Shown here: positions 3,541 through 49,135 of the stretch, piece by piece | Numbering within the stretch: the stretch's first letter is position 1 | How the letters are laid out: each line of letters begins with the position of its first letter | Virus record (IMG/VR): IMGVR_UViG_3300038465_000091 | Coordinates: 124,001 to 188,000 of that record | Strand: one strand, 5' to 3' | DNA: 64,000 bases | Translations under genes and position numbers: made by a program | Notes under the pieces: model-generated | What the model saw: the letters and a program-made list of their open reading frames with translations, nothing else | What the model was told of the DNA's origin: nothing | Databases searched by the model: none

Positions 3541-4174
3541 AGAACTAATTCGGCTTTTGCAAGAGGAAGACCCGACTGGCGAAACAGAAGTCAGCGTCGG
3601 CAACCACGATATTTTCGAGCTTCGCACGGAGCCCGCATACTGGGACGGCAAGCTGCAACTTTTGATTCGTGATCCAGCGAAAGCTCCGTATTACGACATA
3701 GTGGGCGGCAAGTATTGCACGGCAGGCAGCAAGATCGTCATCAACGCCATGAGCATCAGCGATGTGCTGTGGCAGGACCCTGACGCCACTGTGGACTACT
3801 CGGAACTTGGGCAGTACGCCGACAAGTACCGCGAGGCCGATGAGAAGACACGGCGGGCATCCCGTGACGTGACGCTCAAGGTAGGGATGGACGCCTTCTA
3901 TCGTTGGGTAAAGTCGAAGGCGGAAGCGATTCGCCCGGGTGACACGGATTGCCGCAGCGGAGCGGATTACTTCTTCGAAAAGCATTTGCATGTGGACGAC
4001 CCATTGAAGGAATTGCCGAAACAGAAGCACGTAGATTCGACTGGCAAGGAATACGAATGTTGGCCGAGCGTTAACGACCGCCGTGAGTCAGGTTGGGATG
4101 ATCGCATCGAGGTCTACTGGCGTGGCGGCTGGGGTATCAAGATGAAAGACGGCTCCGCTGTCGAAGGGGAATAA
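3530..4174 (+). CDS. Hypothetical phage protein
   Basis: AGGAGG RBS at 3515-3520, GTG at 3530, in track ORF 3431..4174. Confidence 0.75.
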   Translation: MKSKELIRLLQEEDPTGETEVSVGNHDIFELRTEPAYWDGKLQLLIRDPAKAPYYDIVGGKYCTAGSKIVINAMSISDVLWQDPDATVDYSELGQYADKYREADEKTRRASRDVTLKVGMDAFYRWVKSKAEAIRPGDTDCRSGADYFFEKHLHVDDPLKELPKQKHVDSTGKEYECWPSVNDRRESGWDDRIEVYWRGGWGIKMKDGSAVEGE

Positions 4175-4180
4175 GTTTGC

Positions 4181-4270
4181 GGGCGATAAAAGGCGTCGAG
4201 ATCGTGCTTGCTGGATTGCTACGGCGAGCGTGATTGAAGTGCTGGGTGCTGAAAGGTGCCACGCCCACCA
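4181..4270 (+). ncRNA. CCA-ended tRNA-like RNA A (90 nt; acceptor-like stem, long hairpin, GAAA-capped stem)
   Basis: GGGCG/CGCCC-A-CCA ends; internal hairpin ATCGTGCTTGCT...GGCGAGCGTGAT; 3' half homologous to RNA B (5158-5207). Confidence 0.55.
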
Positions 4271-4271
4271 T

Positions 4272-4353
4272 ACGCGGGTAGCTCAGGTGGAGTTTCAGAG
4301 CGTCGGGACGCAAGTCTCGAAGGTCGGTGGTTCGAGTCCGCCCCCGCGTACCA
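4272..4353 (+). tRNA. tRNA-like RNA T1 whose anticodon loop is replaced by a GCAA tetraloop
   Basis: Acceptor ACGCGGG/CCCGCGT-A-CCA, D stem GCTC/GAGC, T arm GGTGG-TTCGAGT-CCGCC; anticodon arm TCGGGAC-GCAA-GTCTCGA. Confidence 0.8.
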
Positions 4354-4381
4354 AGTTTGCTCTTGAGAGCACTAGCGTTTG

Positions 4382-4389
4382 AGTATTAG
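4382..4389 (+). promoter_or_regulatory. AGTATTAG motif, candidate phage-specific promoter element
   Basis: Identical octamer at 4382, 5559, 9139 and 26745, each a short distance upstream of an ORF start. Confidence 0.4.
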
Positions 4390-4394
4390 ATTGT

Positions 4395-5033
4395 ATGACA
4401 AGAAATTTACTGATTACTGCACCGCCGTTCAAAGTGGAAGCATCAATGAAACAACTGGGTTCCAACTTACGTACAGCACGAATTCGACGCGAACTGACGA
4501 TAAAGCAGGTCGCTGAAAGTATAGGGACAGGACCACGCGCCGTCATGGATGCCGAAAAAGGAAAATCCACCACGGGATTAGTTGTTTACACCGCACTTCT
4601 TTGGAAGTATCTACTATTGGATAAAATGCACGAATTAGCCGATCCCCTTCGAGATGAAATCGGGCTTATCTGTGCCTCTAAGCGGGAACCAAAGCGTGCA
4701 ACACGTGCACGTGGAGTTGAAGAGGTGGGTGTCCCGAGCGTGTATTTTATAGGCGACACAAAGCGAGGCATTGTTAAAATTGGAAAATCCAATAAGCCCG
4801 TCAACCGTTTTGAAAGTCTTCAAGCGGCCAATGCGGGGCCGTTGCAACTATTGGCTGAGCTACCCTTTGAAACGGATCATGCCGCTTGGACCGCCGAAAG
4901 CGAACTGCACGCCAAATACAAATACCTCAATACCCACGGTGAGTGGTTTCGATTGGATTCGAGCCTGAACGAGGAAATTCTGGGTATTCGAGCGCGGAGT
5001 TTAAGGAGAGCAGATTTTGTAAGGCCCGAGTAG
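4395..5033 (+). CDS. XRE-type HTH fused to a T5orf172/MUG113-like GIY-YIG nuclease domain
   Basis: N-terminal LRTARIRRELTIKQVAESIG HTH; C-terminal VYFIG...VKIGKS..P..R...LQ......LQLL...E..LH......HGEWF. Its TAG stop lies inside T2. Confidence 0.75.
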   Translation: MTRNLLITAPPFKVEASMKQLGSNLRTARIRRELTIKQVAESIGTGPRAVMDAEKGKSTTGLVVYTALLWKYLLLDKMHELADPLRDEIGLICASKREPKRATRARGVEEVGVPSVYFIGDTKRGIVKIGKSNKPVNRFESLQAANAGPLQLLAELPFETDHAAWTAESELHAKYKYLNTHGEWFRLDSSLNEEILGIRARSLRRADFVRPE

Positions 5034-5114
5034 CTCAGTGTTAGAGCGCCTGTGCAACGCCCGCAAGGGCTACGCCACAGGAGGTCGGTGGTTCGATTCC
5101 ATCCTCGGGTACCA
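5024..5114 (+). tRNA. tRNA-like RNA T2 with a 21-nt hairpin-containing insert in place of the anticodon loop
   Basis: Acceptor GCCCGAG/CTCGGGT-A-CCA with normal D and T arms; stem CCTGTG/CACAGG encloses CAAC-GCCC-GCAA-GGGC-TACGC. Confidence 0.8.
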
Positions 5115-5157
5115 AGTTTGTATGGCGTAGAAGACGAATGTCTTTTATAAAATACAC

Positions 5158-5207
5158 GGGCGGTAGAGCAGCGCAAGCTGGGTGCCGCAAGGCATCACCG
5201 CCCACCA
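5158..5207 (+). ncRNA. 50-nt CCA-ended tRNA minihelix-like RNA B
   Basis: Perfect 7-bp GGGCGGT/ACCGCCC + ACCA; GGTGCC-GCAA-GGCATC stem at the T-arm position; small GC-GCAA-GC hairpin. Confidence 0.65.
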
Positions 5208-5384: not shown

Positions 5385-5460
5385 GCGCCCGTAGCTTAGC
5401 GGTTAAAAGCAGTCGTCTCTAAAACGATGATCGTCGGTTCGAATCCGACTGGGCGCACCA
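5385..5460 (+). tRNA. Amber suppressor tRNA (anticodon CTA)
   Basis: Canonical 76-nt cloverleaf: GCGCCCG/TGGGCGC-A-CCA; anticodon arm GTCGT-CT-CTA-AA-ACGAT (CTA at 5419-5421); T arm GTCGG-TTCGAAT-CCGAC. Confidence 0.85.
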
Positions 5461-5463
5461 AAT

Positions 5464-5543
5464 GGGCGAGTAGCTCAGTGAAAGAGCGGCTTCCGTTCTA
5501 GAACGGAAGAGGGTCGGTGGTTTAAGTCCATCCTCGCCCACCA
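5464..5543 (+). tRNA. tRNA-like RNA T3 with an extended palindromic anticodon arm
   Basis: Acceptor GGGCGAG/CTCGCCC-A-CCA; the anticodon arm is the perfect 20-nt palindrome CTTCCGTTCTAGAACGGAAG; T loop TTTAAGT. Confidence 0.75.
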
Positions 5544-5622
5544 ATTTCCCCAAACCTCAGTATTAGGTAAGAGCGACCCTAACGGGCGTGTATCAATTTT
5601 CAAGAAACTGAGGAAACGTTCC

Positions 5623-6201
5623 ATGAAAATCCTAAGCTGTGCCCAAGGCTGTCTTAATGGCCTCGACAGACTTGCTCTCGCCTTTGGCTATCTAGCCGAA
5701 CCACCAACCAACAACTCAATTCAAAGCCAGACTGTTTATGAAGTTCATCGCCTCTCCTGTGATGAGTGTGATTCAATTGAACGTAACGTGGGGGGCAACT
5801 GTGAACGCTGCGAAGAAGGTAAAATCCTTGTTCGTCAAGCAGATAACTCGGCTAAGAAAGATCGAGTCAAATATCCGCACTCCGACGAACCTTCAGTGCG
5901 CGGCGAAGTCTGTCAATACGTACTTTTCAATCCGCAAGATTTCTACTACTATCTGTACAACTATGGCAAAGGCTTCTTAAATCATTTTGATCGGGAGACT
6001 CAACAAAAACTTGTTCGTCGGGGCGTCGTCGGATACTTGTGGGGAGCGACCGTGCTGCTGGATCGTGGTGTTCCTCGGGGGTACATCTGCCTCTCACCGG
6101 ACATCCGCGAGAAAGCCCTAACCTCGAAGCAGTCGATCCTGATTGACGGCGGCTTCATAGAACTGAAAAGCATGAAATATACGCTTGAAGATTATGCCTA
6201 A
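5623..6201 (+). CDS. Cys-rich N-terminus fused to a fragment paralogous to the major capsid protein
   Basis: LFNPQD...FDRETQQKLVRRGVVGYLWGATVLLDRGVPRGYICLSPD aligns by eye with FFNPRD...IDRETQRKLLKTGVMGYLWGATLLQSRKVGYGCIYILAD in 46489..47448. Confidence 0.8.
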   Translation: MKILSCAQGCLNGLDRLALAFGYLAEPPTNNSIQSQTVYEVHRLSCDECDSIERNVGGNCERCEEGKILVRQADNSAKKDRVKYPHSDEPSVRGEVCQYVLFNPQDFYYYLYNYGKGFLNHFDRETQQKLVRRGVVGYLWGATVLLDRGVPRGYICLSPDIREKALTSKQSILIDGGFIELKSMKYTLEDYA

Positions 6202-6363
6202 GAAGCCGACATTCGGACAGCAGATGGAAGCGATGCTCGTGCTGGGCTGCGTGGTCTGGCTCGTCATCGGGATCGCCAGTGACGTTTTGAATTTCATCAT
6301 GCGTCACTGGACGATTTTCTCGCCTCTTTCCATTCTCCTTGATTTGGTGGTATATTAAACGAG

Positions 6364-6621
6364 ATGGCAAAAATCAATAAGAAGACCAAGACCTGCGGTA
6401 GCACCACCTGCGTCGGCTGCCTGCCGCCGAAGAAGTTCGTATTCAAGATTGAGGGGAGCTTTGAGCTTCCAGCTTTCTGGACTGCGGACGCCGCCGAAGT
6501 GATACTGACAAAGGCTCTCGATCAGGGGTTGAACCTCATCGTCGAGGGGCGTTGCAGTAATAGCATCGAATACGCCGCTTACGTTTTCGAGGACAAAGAT
6601 GCCGACTCCAGCTTCCGTTGA
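6364..6621 (+). CDS. Hypothetical protein
   Basis: 85-aa ORF; ATG 7 nt after a TATATT box, possibly leaderless. Confidence 0.6.
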   Translation: MAKINKKTKTCGSTTCVGCLPPKKFVFKIEGSFELPAFWTADAAEVILTKALDQGLNLIVEGRCSNSIEYAAYVFEDKDADSSFR

Positions 6622-6713
6622 GATAATGCAGTACGCATAGTCCAAAATTCCTATCGATTCTGATCCATTTTTGGGTATAATAGTCTTTCAGGCTCTTCTA
6701 TAGGGGATACCTT

Positions 6714-7109
6714 ATGCATGGAACTGGCGATGTCTTAGGCGATCTGCTCAAGATCGCGGCAATGAACAAGGCGCAGATCGAGAAGCTCCTTGAACATTGG
6801 CAGATGGTGCAGCAAAAGAACCCCCCATCATCTGGGGAATGGCAAGACGCCTCAAAGCGAATCCACGAATTGGCCGAAATTCAACGACTCGTCACCGATG
6901 CGCTCAAGAACCCTTTTGGGAAGCCCGACTACAAGTTCGTCAACCTCGAAGAGGTCTCCGCTCTTTTCAAGCGTCAGATCGAGCGGCTGGGTTGCACCGA
7001 TGTCAAAATAGCGGCCACTTTGAATCACGACGCTATTGACATCGAAGCTCGCTTTACACCCCCGCCATCCCCAATTGTTATCAGTTTCACGGTTGAACCG
7101 AAGGAGTAA
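6714..7109 (+). CDS. Hypothetical protein
   Basis: 131-aa ORF downstream of a GGTATAAT box at ~6675. Confidence 0.65.
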   Translation: MHGTGDVLGDLLKIAAMNKAQIEKLLEHWQMVQQKNPPSSGEWQDASKRIHELAEIQRLVTDALKNPFGKPDYKFVNLEEVSALFKRQIERLGCTDVKIAATLNHDAIDIEARFTPPPSPIVISFTVEPKE

Positions 7110-7112
7110 CCC

Positions 7113-7325
7113 TTGGTTGAACACCACCACGAACGTTGCCACAGTTGCCATAAGCCGTTCGATCATGAATTGCTGGATTTCTTGTCCTGCGAATTGAATG
7201 AGTGCTACCGCTGCACTATGATCGACGAAAAAGACGCCTTCCGCCGTCTGCGGGAGTTGCGGCGTCGGATAATCGTCGGCAACCTGATGGATAGCGTGCC
7301 GATGGCGACGAAAGCGATCCAATGA
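7113..7325 (+). CDS. Small Cys/His-rich hypothetical protein
   Basis: AAGGAG RBS, TTG start; CxxC...CxxxxCxxC. Confidence 0.55.
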   Translation: MVEHHHERCHSCHKPFDHELLDFLSCELNECYRCTMIDEKDAFRRLRELRRRIIVGNLMDSVPMATKAIQ

Positions 7326-7754: not shown

Positions 7755-7785
7755 CCCCTAGAAAAATCAGAGACTTCCGAGCCGC
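7721..7785 (+). promoter_or_regulatory. Putative antiterminator helix
   Basis: GCGGGTCGG (7721-7729) pairs 8/9 with CCGAGCCGC (7777-7785), and GTGTCTGGT (7731-7739) pairs 8/9 with 7766-7774; this would sequester the 5' strand of the terminator. Confidence 0.7.
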
Positions 7786-7807
7786 CCACGGGCGGCTTTT
7801 GTATTTT
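7780..7807 (+). terminator. Intrinsic terminator (attenuator) immediately before the first tRNA
   Basis: AGCCGCC-CACG-GGCGGCT followed by TTTGTATTTT. Confidence 0.8.
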
Positions 7808-45766: not shown

Positions 45767-45902
45767 AAATCGCTAATGAACGAGTTTTCTTGATACCAAA
45801 CCCTTATTACGAACGCACTTTTCTATAGTCCTTCGCCCCCAAAAGGCCGGATTGGAATTGGGCAATCTGTTTCAAATTTGCTTCACAATTCTGGAGAACT
45901 AA

Positions 45903-46472
45903 ATGAGCGTAAAGCTTCATTATCTGGGTCAGAACGATTCCGTTAACTGCACCCCAGCTTTGTTCCTCACTGGCGATCCGGGAACTGACCAACAGACGTT
46001 AGCTGCTGGCGGGTATGTGGGCGGTGTGATTGTTGCCATCACTGGCGCGAGCACAAACGCAGCGTATCCAGTCCAGTCGGCGAACCAACCTGCTTTCGGC
46101 CTCATCGGTAATATCGTTCCGTGCGACACGGACGCTACGACCTATGGCTCGACGAATGGCGGCGTTCCCTTCGCGACACTACTCAATAACGGCGGCGAAT
46201 TCGCTGGCGCTATTGGTCCTTCCGGTTCCAAGAAAGCCCCCGTTGTCCGTGCCATGTGGCAGGGAATGGTGGGTAACTCGGACGGGAAGTGCTACGACAC
46301 GGCGGCAACATTCGTCCTCGGTGCATACCTGTACTGCGGCGGCTCAGCCCACACGAACGTCGGACAGTACACCGATGCGGCACACAGCAATGCGTCCGCG
46401 ATCAAAGTCGGCATCTGCACCCACGTTCCCACCACGACCGAAGCTTGGCTCGGCGTAGCGTCGTTACTGTAA
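45903..46472 (+). CDS. Capsid decoration/cement protein candidate
   Basis: 189-aa Gly/Ala-rich gene immediately before the major capsid gene. Confidence 0.6.
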   Translation: MSVKLHYLGQNDSVNCTPALFLTGDPGTDQQTLAAGGYVGGVIVAITGASTNAAYPVQSANQPAFGLIGNIVPCDTDATTYGSTNGGVPFATLLNNGGEFAGAIGPSGSKKAPVVRAMWQGMVGNSDGKCYDTAATFVLGAYLYCGGSAHTNVGQYTDAAHSNASAIKVGICTHVPTTTEAWLGVASLL

Positions 46473-46488
46473 AGGAGAATGAACTAAC

Positions 46489-47448
46489 ATGGCAAATCTT
46501 TCTCGTACACAACAGCAGACGGCTATGCTTGGACAGTTGCTCAAGACCGCAGGTGGTCGTCAAAAATTAGCGGCGTCGTTGGGACCGTCCCTCCGTCGTC
46601 GTCGTGACTATATGAGCATTGCTCGTAAGGCTCTTATGGTCGAAACTCTTCCCGATGGCGCACTCCCCATCTACGACAAGGAATTCGATGTTAGCGCGAT
46701 GACTGTGGGCTCGACCCCCGGCTCGTCTTTCGTTGAAGCCTTTGTGGTCGGTGAAGAAGGCGGCGACATTGTGCGTGTGACCAAGCCAAAGCGTGTCACG
46801 GTTCCGACGTTTGAAATCGTGTCCAACCCCATGATCCCGATCACCCAGATCAAGGAACGTCGTTTCGATCTCGTTGCTCGCTCACTCAACCTCGCAAAGG
46901 CTGAAGTAGGCGCGGCAGAAGATGGTTACGTGTTCAATCTGTTTGACGGTGTTGCGGCGGGCGCAGTCGGCCATGCACCAAACGATCCGGTTTACAACCC
47001 CGACATTCCAATCAACGCCCCCATCGACATCAACTCGCTGGCGGATGGATTTGGTCAGGTTGCACGCCACGATCTGTCGGTTGCTTTCATCTTCTTCAAT
47101 CCTCGCGATTACACGGATTTGTTGAAGTGGACGCAGCAAAACATCGACCGTGAAACACAGCGCAAGCTGTTGAAGACGGGCGTCATGGGCTATCTCTGGG
47201 GCGCAACGCTCCTCCAGTCTCGTAAGGTCGGCTACGGCTGCATCTATATTCTGGCGGACGCTGAGTTCCTCGGCGTAATCCCAGAACGTATTCCGTTGAC
47301 CGTGATGAGTGCCGACCGTCCTGATTTGAGGCAAATCGGATTCTCGATATTTGAGAATTTGGGCTTCCTCGTCTTCAATCCTTCAGGCGTTCAGCGGTTG
47401 ACCGTTAACGGTCGCTTCAACGCGGCTGCCAACTTCGGCGAGAACTAA
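46489..47448 (+). CDS. Major capsid protein (HK97-fold candidate)
   Basis: AAGGAG RBS; 319 aa; R..L.VE.LP.GA.P.YD, PTFEI.SNP.I....I..R.FD, GYLWGA; strong terminator follows. Confidence 0.85.
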   Translation: MANLSRTQQQTAMLGQLLKTAGGRQKLAASLGPSLRRRRDYMSIARKALMVETLPDGALPIYDKEFDVSAMTVGSTPGSSFVEAFVVGEEGGDIVRVTKPKRVTVPTFEIVSNPMIPITQIKERRFDLVARSLNLAKAEVGAAEDGYVFNLFDGVAAGAVGHAPNDPVYNPDIPINAPIDINSLADGFGQVARHDLSVAFIFFNPRDYTDLLKWTQQNIDRETQRKLLKTGVMGYLWGATLLQSRKVGYGCIYILADAEFLGVIPERIPLTVMSADRPDLRQIGFSIFENLGFLVFNPSGVQRLTVNGRFNAAANFGEN

Positions 47449-48196: not shown

Positions 48197-49135
48197 ATGA
48201 AGTTATTCATCTACCTAACCATTAGGTGGGGGCGTCTTGTGATTGTCTACCGCATAACCAACAAAATAAACGGCAAGGTTTATATCGGCAAGACCGTTAA
48301 GCCGCTTACCAGACGTTGGCAACACCACAAAAGAGATGCTCGTGGTGAGAGTCAAGTGTACTTTCATCGCGCTATCCGCAAACACGGTCCGGAATCTTTT
48401 ATAGTTGAGCCTGTCTATGTAGCCAAAACTGAGAAAGAGTTGGCTGCGATGGAGACGTTCTTCATTGTCCTGCATCAGTCTTACAAACCAGAAAATGGCT
48501 ACAACGGAACTCTTGGTGGGGATGGTATCGGACTTCTCACGGACGAAACCCGTCAACGGATGCGTGATGCTAAAACTCCAGAAATTAGGCGTCGTATGAG
48601 TGAGCGGATGATGGGTGTTCCTCTCTCCATAGAGCATTGTAGGCGCATCGGGGATTCGAAACGTGGTGAAAAAAACCCGCATTGGGGCAAACCACGTAGT
48701 GAAGAAACCCGTCGCAGGATTGGGAAGGCTCAATTAGGAAAGAAACTATCCCCCGAGCACCGCGAAAAAATAGGTAAAGCGCACCAAGGAAAGGCACTGT
48801 CAGAAGAACATCGTCTTGCCTTGAGTGAGGCCCATAAAGGGTTGGTGTTCTCCGATGAACACCGCAAAAATCTTAGTCAAGCTCTCTCGGGGGAGCGAAA
48901 CGTTGGGTACGGCACGAAGTGGGTATCCAAAGATTCCGAAACAATCAGGATTCCTTCCCATCTTCTCGATTCTTATGTAGAACAGGGCTGGACGGCGGGA
49001 AGGGCGTCTTTGTTGGGCAAGAAACCACCTAAAGAACGGATTGAGAAGGTGTTGGCGTACTGGACTCCCGAACGTCGAGCACAGCGGTCGGAGGACTATA
49101 CTATGCGACGGGAGAATCAAACACAATGTTCGTAA
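48197..49135 (+). mobile_element. Free-standing GIY-YIG homing endonuclease with NUMOD3 repeats (start probably GTG 48239)
   Basis: IVYRITN.INGKVYIGKT, AIRKHG, NGYN.TLGGDG, repeated H...I..A..G motifs. Confidence 0.9.

Follow-up and report, generated by a model that had tools for sequence, protein, structure and literature searches.

A stand-alone A-domain akin to that of the major capsid protein, encoded in the tRNA block of a huge peat phage

Why should a phage keep, far from its head genes, a separate gene resembling a piece of its own major capsid protein (MCP)? The question is raised by a 64,000-nucleotide stretch of DNA (the window) comprising bases 124001-188000 of the 223.5-kb IMG/VR viral record IMGVR_UViG_3300038465_000091. 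Since this record is estimated to be 71% complete, the source phage must be huge, roughly 300 kb. Within a tRNA block, the window carries on the forward strand an intact open reading frame (ORF) at 5623..6201, coding for a protein of 192 amino acids (P0001, called here the mini) and preceded by a leader (5559-5622, forward strand) with a Shine-Dalgarno-like site, GAGGAAA. The gene lies 41 kb upstream of the MCP gene (P0002, 319 amino acids; 46489..47448, forward strand) and outside the head-morphogenesis module. In all probability, the mini reproduces, as a separate protein, the axial (A) domain of this phage's MCP, which has the HK97 fold and is of the phage G type, and it belongs to a family of such phage proteins.

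Relationship of the mini to capsid proteins

Direct comparison of the mini with the MCP of the same phage by BLASTP gave an E-value of 1e-13, with 28 of 61 residues identical (46%) between residues 97-157 of the mini and 198-252 of the MCP. A sequence-only reading of the window, made before any database search, had noticed this match at residues ~99-160, and it holds. With the MCP as query, the entire 223.5-kb genome, searched in all six frames, yielded two places only, the MCP gene itself and the mini ORF (E 1.8e-10 for the latter). At the DNA level, the segment common to both genes is 61% identical, the longest shared word does not exceed 10 nt, and GC content at third codon positions (GC3) is 0.49 in the mini versus 0.61 in the MCP gene. 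These values mark the mini as an old, diverged copy of a part of the MCP. The earlier view that the frame is intact and the copy not a fresh one is thereby borne out, as it is by the ratio of nonsynonymous to synonymous substitution rates (dN/dS, 0.06), conserved orthologues and synteny described below.

The MCP matches phrog_2522 'major head protein' (E 1e-42) and gp27 of phage G (6WKK, E 2e-52). With the major head protein of the Tunturiibacter phage Tunturi_5 it shares 71% identity; Tunturi_5, a 309-kb phage with an Acidobacteriota host, is the nearest cultured relative. Together with the peat origin of the DNA, this identity suggests that the host of the window phage is also one of the Acidobacteriota. 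MCPs of this phage clade are 87-100% identical overall, their A-domain being nearly invariant, and the near-invariant MCP motif DRETQ..L...G.VGYLWGA is also found in the mini. Two further products of Tunturi_5 (loci L023/L024) show fainter likeness to the A-domain. One is gp219 (PP885688.1, 158431-158778; 116 amino acids, near the portal gene), which is weakly A-domain-like (hhalign probability 89%). The other is gp310 (254083-254943; 287 amino acids); its N-terminal part is similar to the A-domain core with a probability of 72%, and a Walker-A-like motif, GHGRRQTGKT, lies in its C-terminal part.

The mini has counterparts only for MCP residues ~183-290 (47035..47358, forward strand; BLAST core 47080-47244) and is devoid of the N-arm, E-loop and P-domain. 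Over this range, family profiles and structure alignments match MCPs contiguously, from the N-terminal helix of the mini to about residue 178. Three parts can be distinguished, all on the forward strand. The first (5626..5694) consists of a strand (residues 2-4) and a helix (residues 13-24, DRLALAFG), the counterpart of the MCP helix at ~183-190 in the alignments and in both structural models. The second (residues ~25-96; 5695..5910) is a lineage-specific Cys-rich insert with two CxxC pairs (C46 and C49, C60 and C63; 5758-5811), zinc-ribbon-like and possibly zinc-binding. The third (residues 97-178; 5911..6156) is the conserved A-domain core, made up of strand YVLFNP, a helix, DRETQQKL, hairpin GVVGYLWGATVLL and further strands, and shows the highest conservation both within the family and with MCPs.

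Since homology to the MCP starts at the helix N-terminal of the insert, the Cys-rich part, which sits between the first helix and the first strand, is an insert inside a capsid-derived domain. It is not the unrelated domain behind which a capsid piece had been supposed to be fused. P0001 and a variant 86% identical to it, P0005, carry the insert; in P0128 and the L006 orthologue (48% identical to P0001) it is degenerate, and P0006, P0007 and all members of 95-140 amino acids are without it. A lipoprotein or signal peptide at the N-terminus (MKILSC) was considered and rejected: the stretch is too short, differs between orthologues and forms a strand of the domain in the model.

Structure prediction led to the same domain. 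The AlphaFold2 model of P0001 has a mean pLDDT (predicted local distance difference test score) of 77, with 91-97 in the core and low values in the insert, and that of the minimal 95-residue member P0148 has a pLDDT of 93. Both models form a single alpha/beta domain. An exhaustive comparison of structures gave, among the 50 best matches of each, almost only A-domains of HK97-fold capsid proteins or encapsulins, for instance lambda gpE (Z 8.9) and residues 240-383 of HK97 gp5 (Z 7.7). Foldseek against the PDB returned nearly exclusively HK97 capsids, though with weak E-values (0.05-0.2), and the ESM Atlas search gave sub-threshold leads only (0.88), to clusters of viral hypothetical and capsid proteins. 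Because the structural matches combine with sequence homology, the assignment of the mini as a complete stand-alone A-domain is secure. Thus, the significant pairwise alignment and the predicted structure agree in mapping the mini onto the A-domain of the HK97 fold. The description of the gene as a stand-alone fragment of the capsid protein was right as to its isolation and its derivation. It was wrong in implying a one-off fragment, since the mini is a whole A-domain and has a wider family among phages.

To collect this family, 1.84 billion representative proteins were searched exhaustively with a profile. Of the 25 hits, some 20 are complete small ORFs of 95-190 amino acids, and those checked sit inside contigs; the minimal members have 95-111 amino acids. 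These ORFs share a pattern of helix LA.AFG, strand V.FNP.D[FY] and DRETQ..L...G.VGYLWGA, followed by strands. The family profile recognizes the phage G gp27 sequence (6WKK) with an E-value of 1.4e-12, and a word-index search with the 95-residue member placed first in the alignment returned mostly MCPs. The mini itself is below the threshold of every capsid-family hidden Markov model (HMM): P0001 has no Pfam match at E up to 1 and no match to phrog_2522, and reaches phrog_544 at E 0.07 only. The other members, too, fall into none of the Pfam, PHROG or PADLOC families. The family is rare (~25 clusters versus more than 1400 MCP clusters), and no relative was revealed when 185,579 species-representative cellular genomes were scanned for its motif. 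The literature searched, whose coverage is incomplete, did not contain any earlier account of free-standing A-domains encoded by phages. The family is thus apparently both rare and undescribed.

A maximum-likelihood tree of 24 short proteins and MCPs over the shared region (136 columns) bears on a point raised by the sequence-only reading, whether these short proteins stem from the capsid genes of their own lineage or from foreign ones. Twenty-three of the 24 group in a single clade with support 100/99 and a long stem; its neighbour is the clade of Tunturi and window MCPs, while MCPs of phage G and LR745208 fall outside this grouping. P0150, the sole short protein outside the clade, may represent an independent truncation. 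Compared with MCPs, the short proteins have terminal branches 10-50 times longer. As far as the tree can tell, the short-protein clade has branched from within the phage-G-type MCP lineage; long branches on 136 columns may produce such a placement artefactually.

Comparison with full-length capsid proteins of the phage G gp27 type (6WKK; PF25209 Phage_capsid_4; phrog_2522) shows what has been kept and what has been lost. The A-domains are homologous and share the motif FNP.D(Y/F) ... DRETQ.KL...G.(V/M)GYLWGAT. In contrast, the mini does not possess the full architecture of N-arm, E-loop, P-domain and A-domain (about 280-330 amino acids), has acquired a Cys-rich insert and resides outside the head module. 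Its RNA level is low in comparison with that of the MCP, its evolution is 10-50 times faster and its sequence is below HMM thresholds.

The closest known analogue of this architecture are the Family 4 A-domain encapsulins (PF08967 / DUF1884; PF0899 of P. furiosus, PDB 2PK8), proteins of ~100 amino acids consisting of the HK97 A-domain only (PMC8346489). They are cellular, known from Thermococcales and Rhodothermus (thermophilic archaea or Bacteroidota), and are encoded in a two-component operon downstream of hydrogenase, OsmC, GAPDH or DeoC genes (PMC8346489). Such cellular stand-alone A-domains have been reported to form complexes with enzymes (PMC8346489). The mini resembles them in its A-domain-only fold and in size, and 2PK8 is matched with Z 6.7 by P0001 (82 of 94 residues) and with Z 5.3 by the 95-residue member. 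However, PF08967 is matched by none of 25 sequences (23 short proteins and two MCP segments) at E up to 0.1, and the mini-family profile run against PDB sequences finds 6WKK and not 2PK8 at E up to 10. Neighbours of the mini are tRNAs, a homing-endonuclease-like gene and small ORFans instead of an enzyme gene, and the family is known from peat and permafrost viral contigs, with no relatives in the species-representative cellular genomes. The A-domain-only architecture has a viral, independent origin here, with the parent MCP lineage still identifiable.

Selection, distribution and expression

If the mini were a decaying leftover, its sequence should show it. Comparison with the natural variant in L009 gave a dN/dS of 0.059 overall (dS 1.5) and 0.017 in the core (residues 97-160), so that the neutral decay which this comparison might have revealed is not found; in a second pair of orthologues, whose dS is close to saturation, the ratio was about 0.2. 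At least six diverged orthologues in conserved synteny have kept an intact frame. An identical mini gene is present on another IMG/VR contig, and 89-100% of the words of the region are present in peat and permafrost metagenomes from 2018-2025. Evidently, the mini is under strong purifying selection.

At the same time, the gene is accessory, as complete relatives either have or lack it. G003 (463 kb) and G005 (332 kb) contain an MCP only, and G004 (456 kb) contains an MCP, a mini of 165 amino acids and a second full-length, divergent MCP paralogue. MCPs of relatives without the mini are 93-95% identical. When the window is compared with L006 or L001, identity is 44-48% for the mini and 57-91% for neighbouring genes. 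The gene is thus patchy and fast-evolving, yet constrained. The second paralogue of G004 (L109, 880-1977) is 44% identical to P0002; from its first in-frame start it has an N-terminal extension resembling a twin-arginine signal (RRNFLRGLL), which may equally be due to a mis-set start.

Exact contigs of the phage were found in three independent peat metatranscriptomes, for which contig depths given by the assembler serve as a crude measure. In all three, the block 45824-47439, comprising the ORF 45903..46472 and the MCP gene, stands out at a depth of 40-200 with sharp edges, its flanks having 0-6. Such edges indicate that the libraries report RNA and not carried-over DNA. The phage is transcriptionally active and infecting in situ in the peat samples. 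RNA of the mini is detectable but low, at most about 2% of that of the MCP in these bulk samples, which contain no timing information. The ORF 45903..46472 upstream of the MCP gene has no sequence similarity to the phage G decoration protein gp26 (E 0.52), so that its position and co-transcription are all that suggest a decoration role for it.

Small ORFs at 6714-7325, downstream of the mini, are represented in each of the three runs, with depths of 2-22. The 8-mer TTCTATAG, located at the 5' edge of the MCP transcript block, occurs again at 6696, 18 nt before ORF 6714. Its recurrence hints that this ORF may have a promoter of its own; with two occurrences only, the hint is weak.

The genes around the mini

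The same gene order is kept in the window and in L001, L006 and L009: tRNA-CUA, a second unusual tRNA, the mini, a membrane protein, an 85-residue CxxC protein and small ORFs. In the window, both tRNAs are on the forward strand and were called by ARAGORN and Rfam. The first (5385-5460) has the anticodon CUA and is of the amber-suppressor type; the second (5464-5543) has an 8-nt anticodon loop, UUCUAGAA, in which ARAGORN reads the four-base anticodon CUAG. The pair lies upstream of mini orthologues in L001 (512-672), L009 (512-670) and L005 (5763-5921) and is almost identical across three diverged phages. In L006, its place is taken by two ordinary CUA tRNAs (5032-5203). The distant 95-residue member in L013 follows a cluster of tRNA-CUA (3559-3635), tRNA-Pro and transfer-messenger RNA (tmRNA). 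A tRNA-like sequence at ~4270-4345 of the window, which has a CCA end and features of an acceptor and a T-arm, is called neither by ARAGORN nor by Rfam at the gathering threshold.

Recoding of TAG, prompted by the suppressor-type tRNAs, was considered and rejected. Long ORFs stay intact under genetic code 11, and 58 of the 262 have TAG as their stop codon; treating TAG as open brings no greater gain than doing so with TAA.

Immediately behind the mini, a predicted membrane protein of 54 amino acids is encoded on the forward strand (6194..6358). Its ATG overlaps the stop codon of the mini (ATGCCTAA), suggesting translational coupling of both genes. The overlap is also found in L001, L002, L006 and L009, that is, in five loci together with the window, for membrane proteins of 54-61 amino acids with 76-78% identity; the gene is not adjacent to the mini in G004 and L013. 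It is followed on the same strand by the 85-residue CxxC ORF (6364..6621), syntenic in L001 and L006 at 62-65% identity. The best conserved ORF of the small-ORF block is a Cys/His-rich one of 70 amino acids (7113-7325; HHHERCHSCH...CELNECYRC), with 87-90% identity in L001 and L006. The block ends with a terminator-like hairpin at 7779-7798.

Neither the membrane protein (in Pfam, PHROG and PADLOC) nor the CxxC and Cys/His-rich ORFs matched any family. Altogether, Pfam, PHROG and PADLOC scans of the mini, its family and ten neighbours were uninformative except for ORF 4395..5033. This homing-endonuclease-like ORF, located in the tRNA array, combines a helix-turn-helix motif with MUG113/T5orf172 (GIY-YIG-like). 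An HNH-like ORF (4172-5041) has a comparable place in the tRNA array of L006, and a GIY-YIG-type ORF (48197-49135) is found in the head module of the window, ~750 nt downstream of the MCP gene.

Possible functions of the mini

What might a free A-domain do for the phage? The sequence-only reading had suggested a decoy for a capsid epitope, a factor excluding related phages or a modulator of assembly. Lacking the E-loop, N-arm and P-domain, which link HK97 subunits and capsomers, the mini cannot polymerise. At most, it would occupy surfaces that bind an A-domain, be they those of host sensors or of the MCP. It does keep the best conserved motif of the A-domain, and it is probably a mimic, in soluble form, of the capsomer-forming face of the MCP.

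Bacterial immunity is able to sense MCPs, CapRel-SJ46 and Lit being examples. The same applies to Avs7, Avs8, Avs10 and Dsr1 (PMC13581612). The first three bind the capsomer-forming face of the A-domain (PMC13581612), and this gives a rationale to the idea of a decoy. Avs7/8/10 and Dsr1 are host proteins and not relatives of the mini; as its possible targets, Avs7/8/10 would meet in it the face that they bind. Our tentative preference, ahead of a role in capsid assembly, is that the mini may be a decoy for MCP-sensing host immunity. As such, it would occupy host receptors for that face, namely Avs7/8/10-type sensors of the STAND class (signal transduction ATPases with numerous domains) or capsid sensors like CapRel and Lit. 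It could act in two ways. The mini might fill a sensor without providing the P-domain and E-loop contacts needed for activation, its insert adding bulk, or it might titrate sensors before the MCP accumulates.

A decoy fits well with an accessory, patchy and fast-evolving gene situated in a block of tRNAs and homing endonucleases. Phage tRNA/homing-endonuclease regions are documented anti-defence loci (PMC13096335). The accessory, fast-evolving and patchy character of the mini and its location in a variable region are typical of anti-defence genes, though not specific to them. The literature searched, again with incomplete coverage, contains no example of an A-domain decoy encoded by a phage.

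Several points weigh against a decoy. Binding of any sensor by the mini is our conjecture, for a host that is presumably one of the Acidobacteriota. An isolated A-domain might even trigger a sensor and not block it. A decoy acting by titration is expected to be abundant, unless made early and transiently, and the RNA of the mini was represented by one 142-nt exact piece (5585-5726, leader and gene start) at a depth of 3.7 in one run of the three. The overlapping membrane-protein gene is left unexplained by a cytosolic decoy. The family has no match among PADLOC or anti-defence families (a PADLOC match is not to be expected for an anti-defence protein), and Z-scores of 5-9 in the structural comparison would, taken alone, be middling.

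Alternatively, the mini might regulate assembly of the phage's own capsid. In shells of the HK97 type, A-domains pack around the capsomer axis. A free A-domain which retains the fold and the motif near-invariant in MCPs could dock there on MCP monomers or partial capsomers, serving as a chaperone, a cap or a minor component at special positions. MCP paralogy recurs in the clade (the full-length paralogue of G004 and, weakly, gp219 and gp310 of Tunturi_5), and assembly-redirecting MCP homologues are known. The SaPIbov5 size-redirecting protein Ccm (7RWZ) and the T4 vertex protein gp24 (1YUE), both diverged HK97-fold paralogues that interact with the MCP lattice, are among the structural matches. 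These proteins, however, are complete HK97 folds entering the shell, so that for a lone A-domain the analogy is functional only.

Other observations speak against a part in assembly. The mini is dispensable, being missing from complete relatives with 93-95% identical MCPs. Its gene is 41 kb away from the head module, with RNA at most about 2% of that of the MCP in bulk. The mini also evolves much more rapidly than the MCP, an almost invariant protein which it would have to fit. A prediction of the MCP-mini complex scored 0.00; it was run without controls and counts neither way. We regard a role in assembly as possible but doubtful.

Similarly doubtful, to our mind, is a third explanation, in which the domain has been exapted for a task unrelated to capsids, in the manner of Family 4. 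It might then form small oligomers or a platform for the membrane protein of the overlapping gene or for a ligand of the Cys loop, such as nucleic acid or tRNA-related factors. This would accord with the complexes of cellular stand-alone A-domains with enzymes (PMC8346489), the fold similarity to PF0899/2PK8 (Z 6.7 and 5.3) and the overlap with a well-conserved gene for a small membrane protein, kept in five loci. The same can be said of the tRNA adjacency, which holds even for the distant 95-residue member, and of the variable inserts, suggestive of changing partners. Yet the mini does not belong to PF08967 by sequence and has no enzyme gene in its neighbourhood, the membrane-protein partner is missing beside the members in G004 and L013, and the adjacency to tRNAs may merely reflect a shared genome layout.

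It is improbable that the mini is a weapon against co-infecting related phages, that is, a dominant-negative subunit poisoning capsid assembly of the rival (superinfection exclusion). An interface mimic unable to polymerise is a classical dominant-negative design, the gene is accessory and fast-evolving, and the neighbouring gene for a small membrane protein is reminiscent of exclusion modules. But with clade MCPs 87-100% identical and their A-domain nearly invariant, a poison subunit would be unable to tell self from rival and could not spare the MCP of its own phage, while A-domains of unrelated phages are too different to be targeted.

Finally, a non-functional remnant of an old partial duplication, or chance similarity, could be suspected from the very low RNA signal and the rarity of the family, but this reading is effectively refuted by the selection and conservation data: the E-value of 1e-13, the frame intact in at least six diverged syntenic orthologues, the low dN/dS (0.06 overall, 0.017 in the core), the confidently predicted fold and the presence of near-identical sequence in peat and permafrost samples of 2018-2025.

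The HK97 fold of capsid proteins is the most abundant protein fold in the biosphere. The mini family shows an A-domain-only derivative of it arising inside a virus, with an identifiable parent MCP lineage, to be compared with archaeal Family 4. If the mini is only a minor helper of assembly, it lengthens the list of capsid paralogues only modestly. The family as a whole might, more speculatively and in our opinion rather improbably, represent phage mimics of a pathogen-associated molecular pattern (PAMP), free A-domains by which huge soil phages would blind receptors similar to Avs7/8/10 and CapRel. If so, it would be, to our knowledge, the first known anti-defence protein that copies the sensed part of the phage's own capsid protein. 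With 95-192 amino acids, its members are clonable candidates for asking whether capsid sensing can be deceived by decoys, whether capsomers are controlled by free A-domains and how domain-only derivatives of capsid proteins originate.

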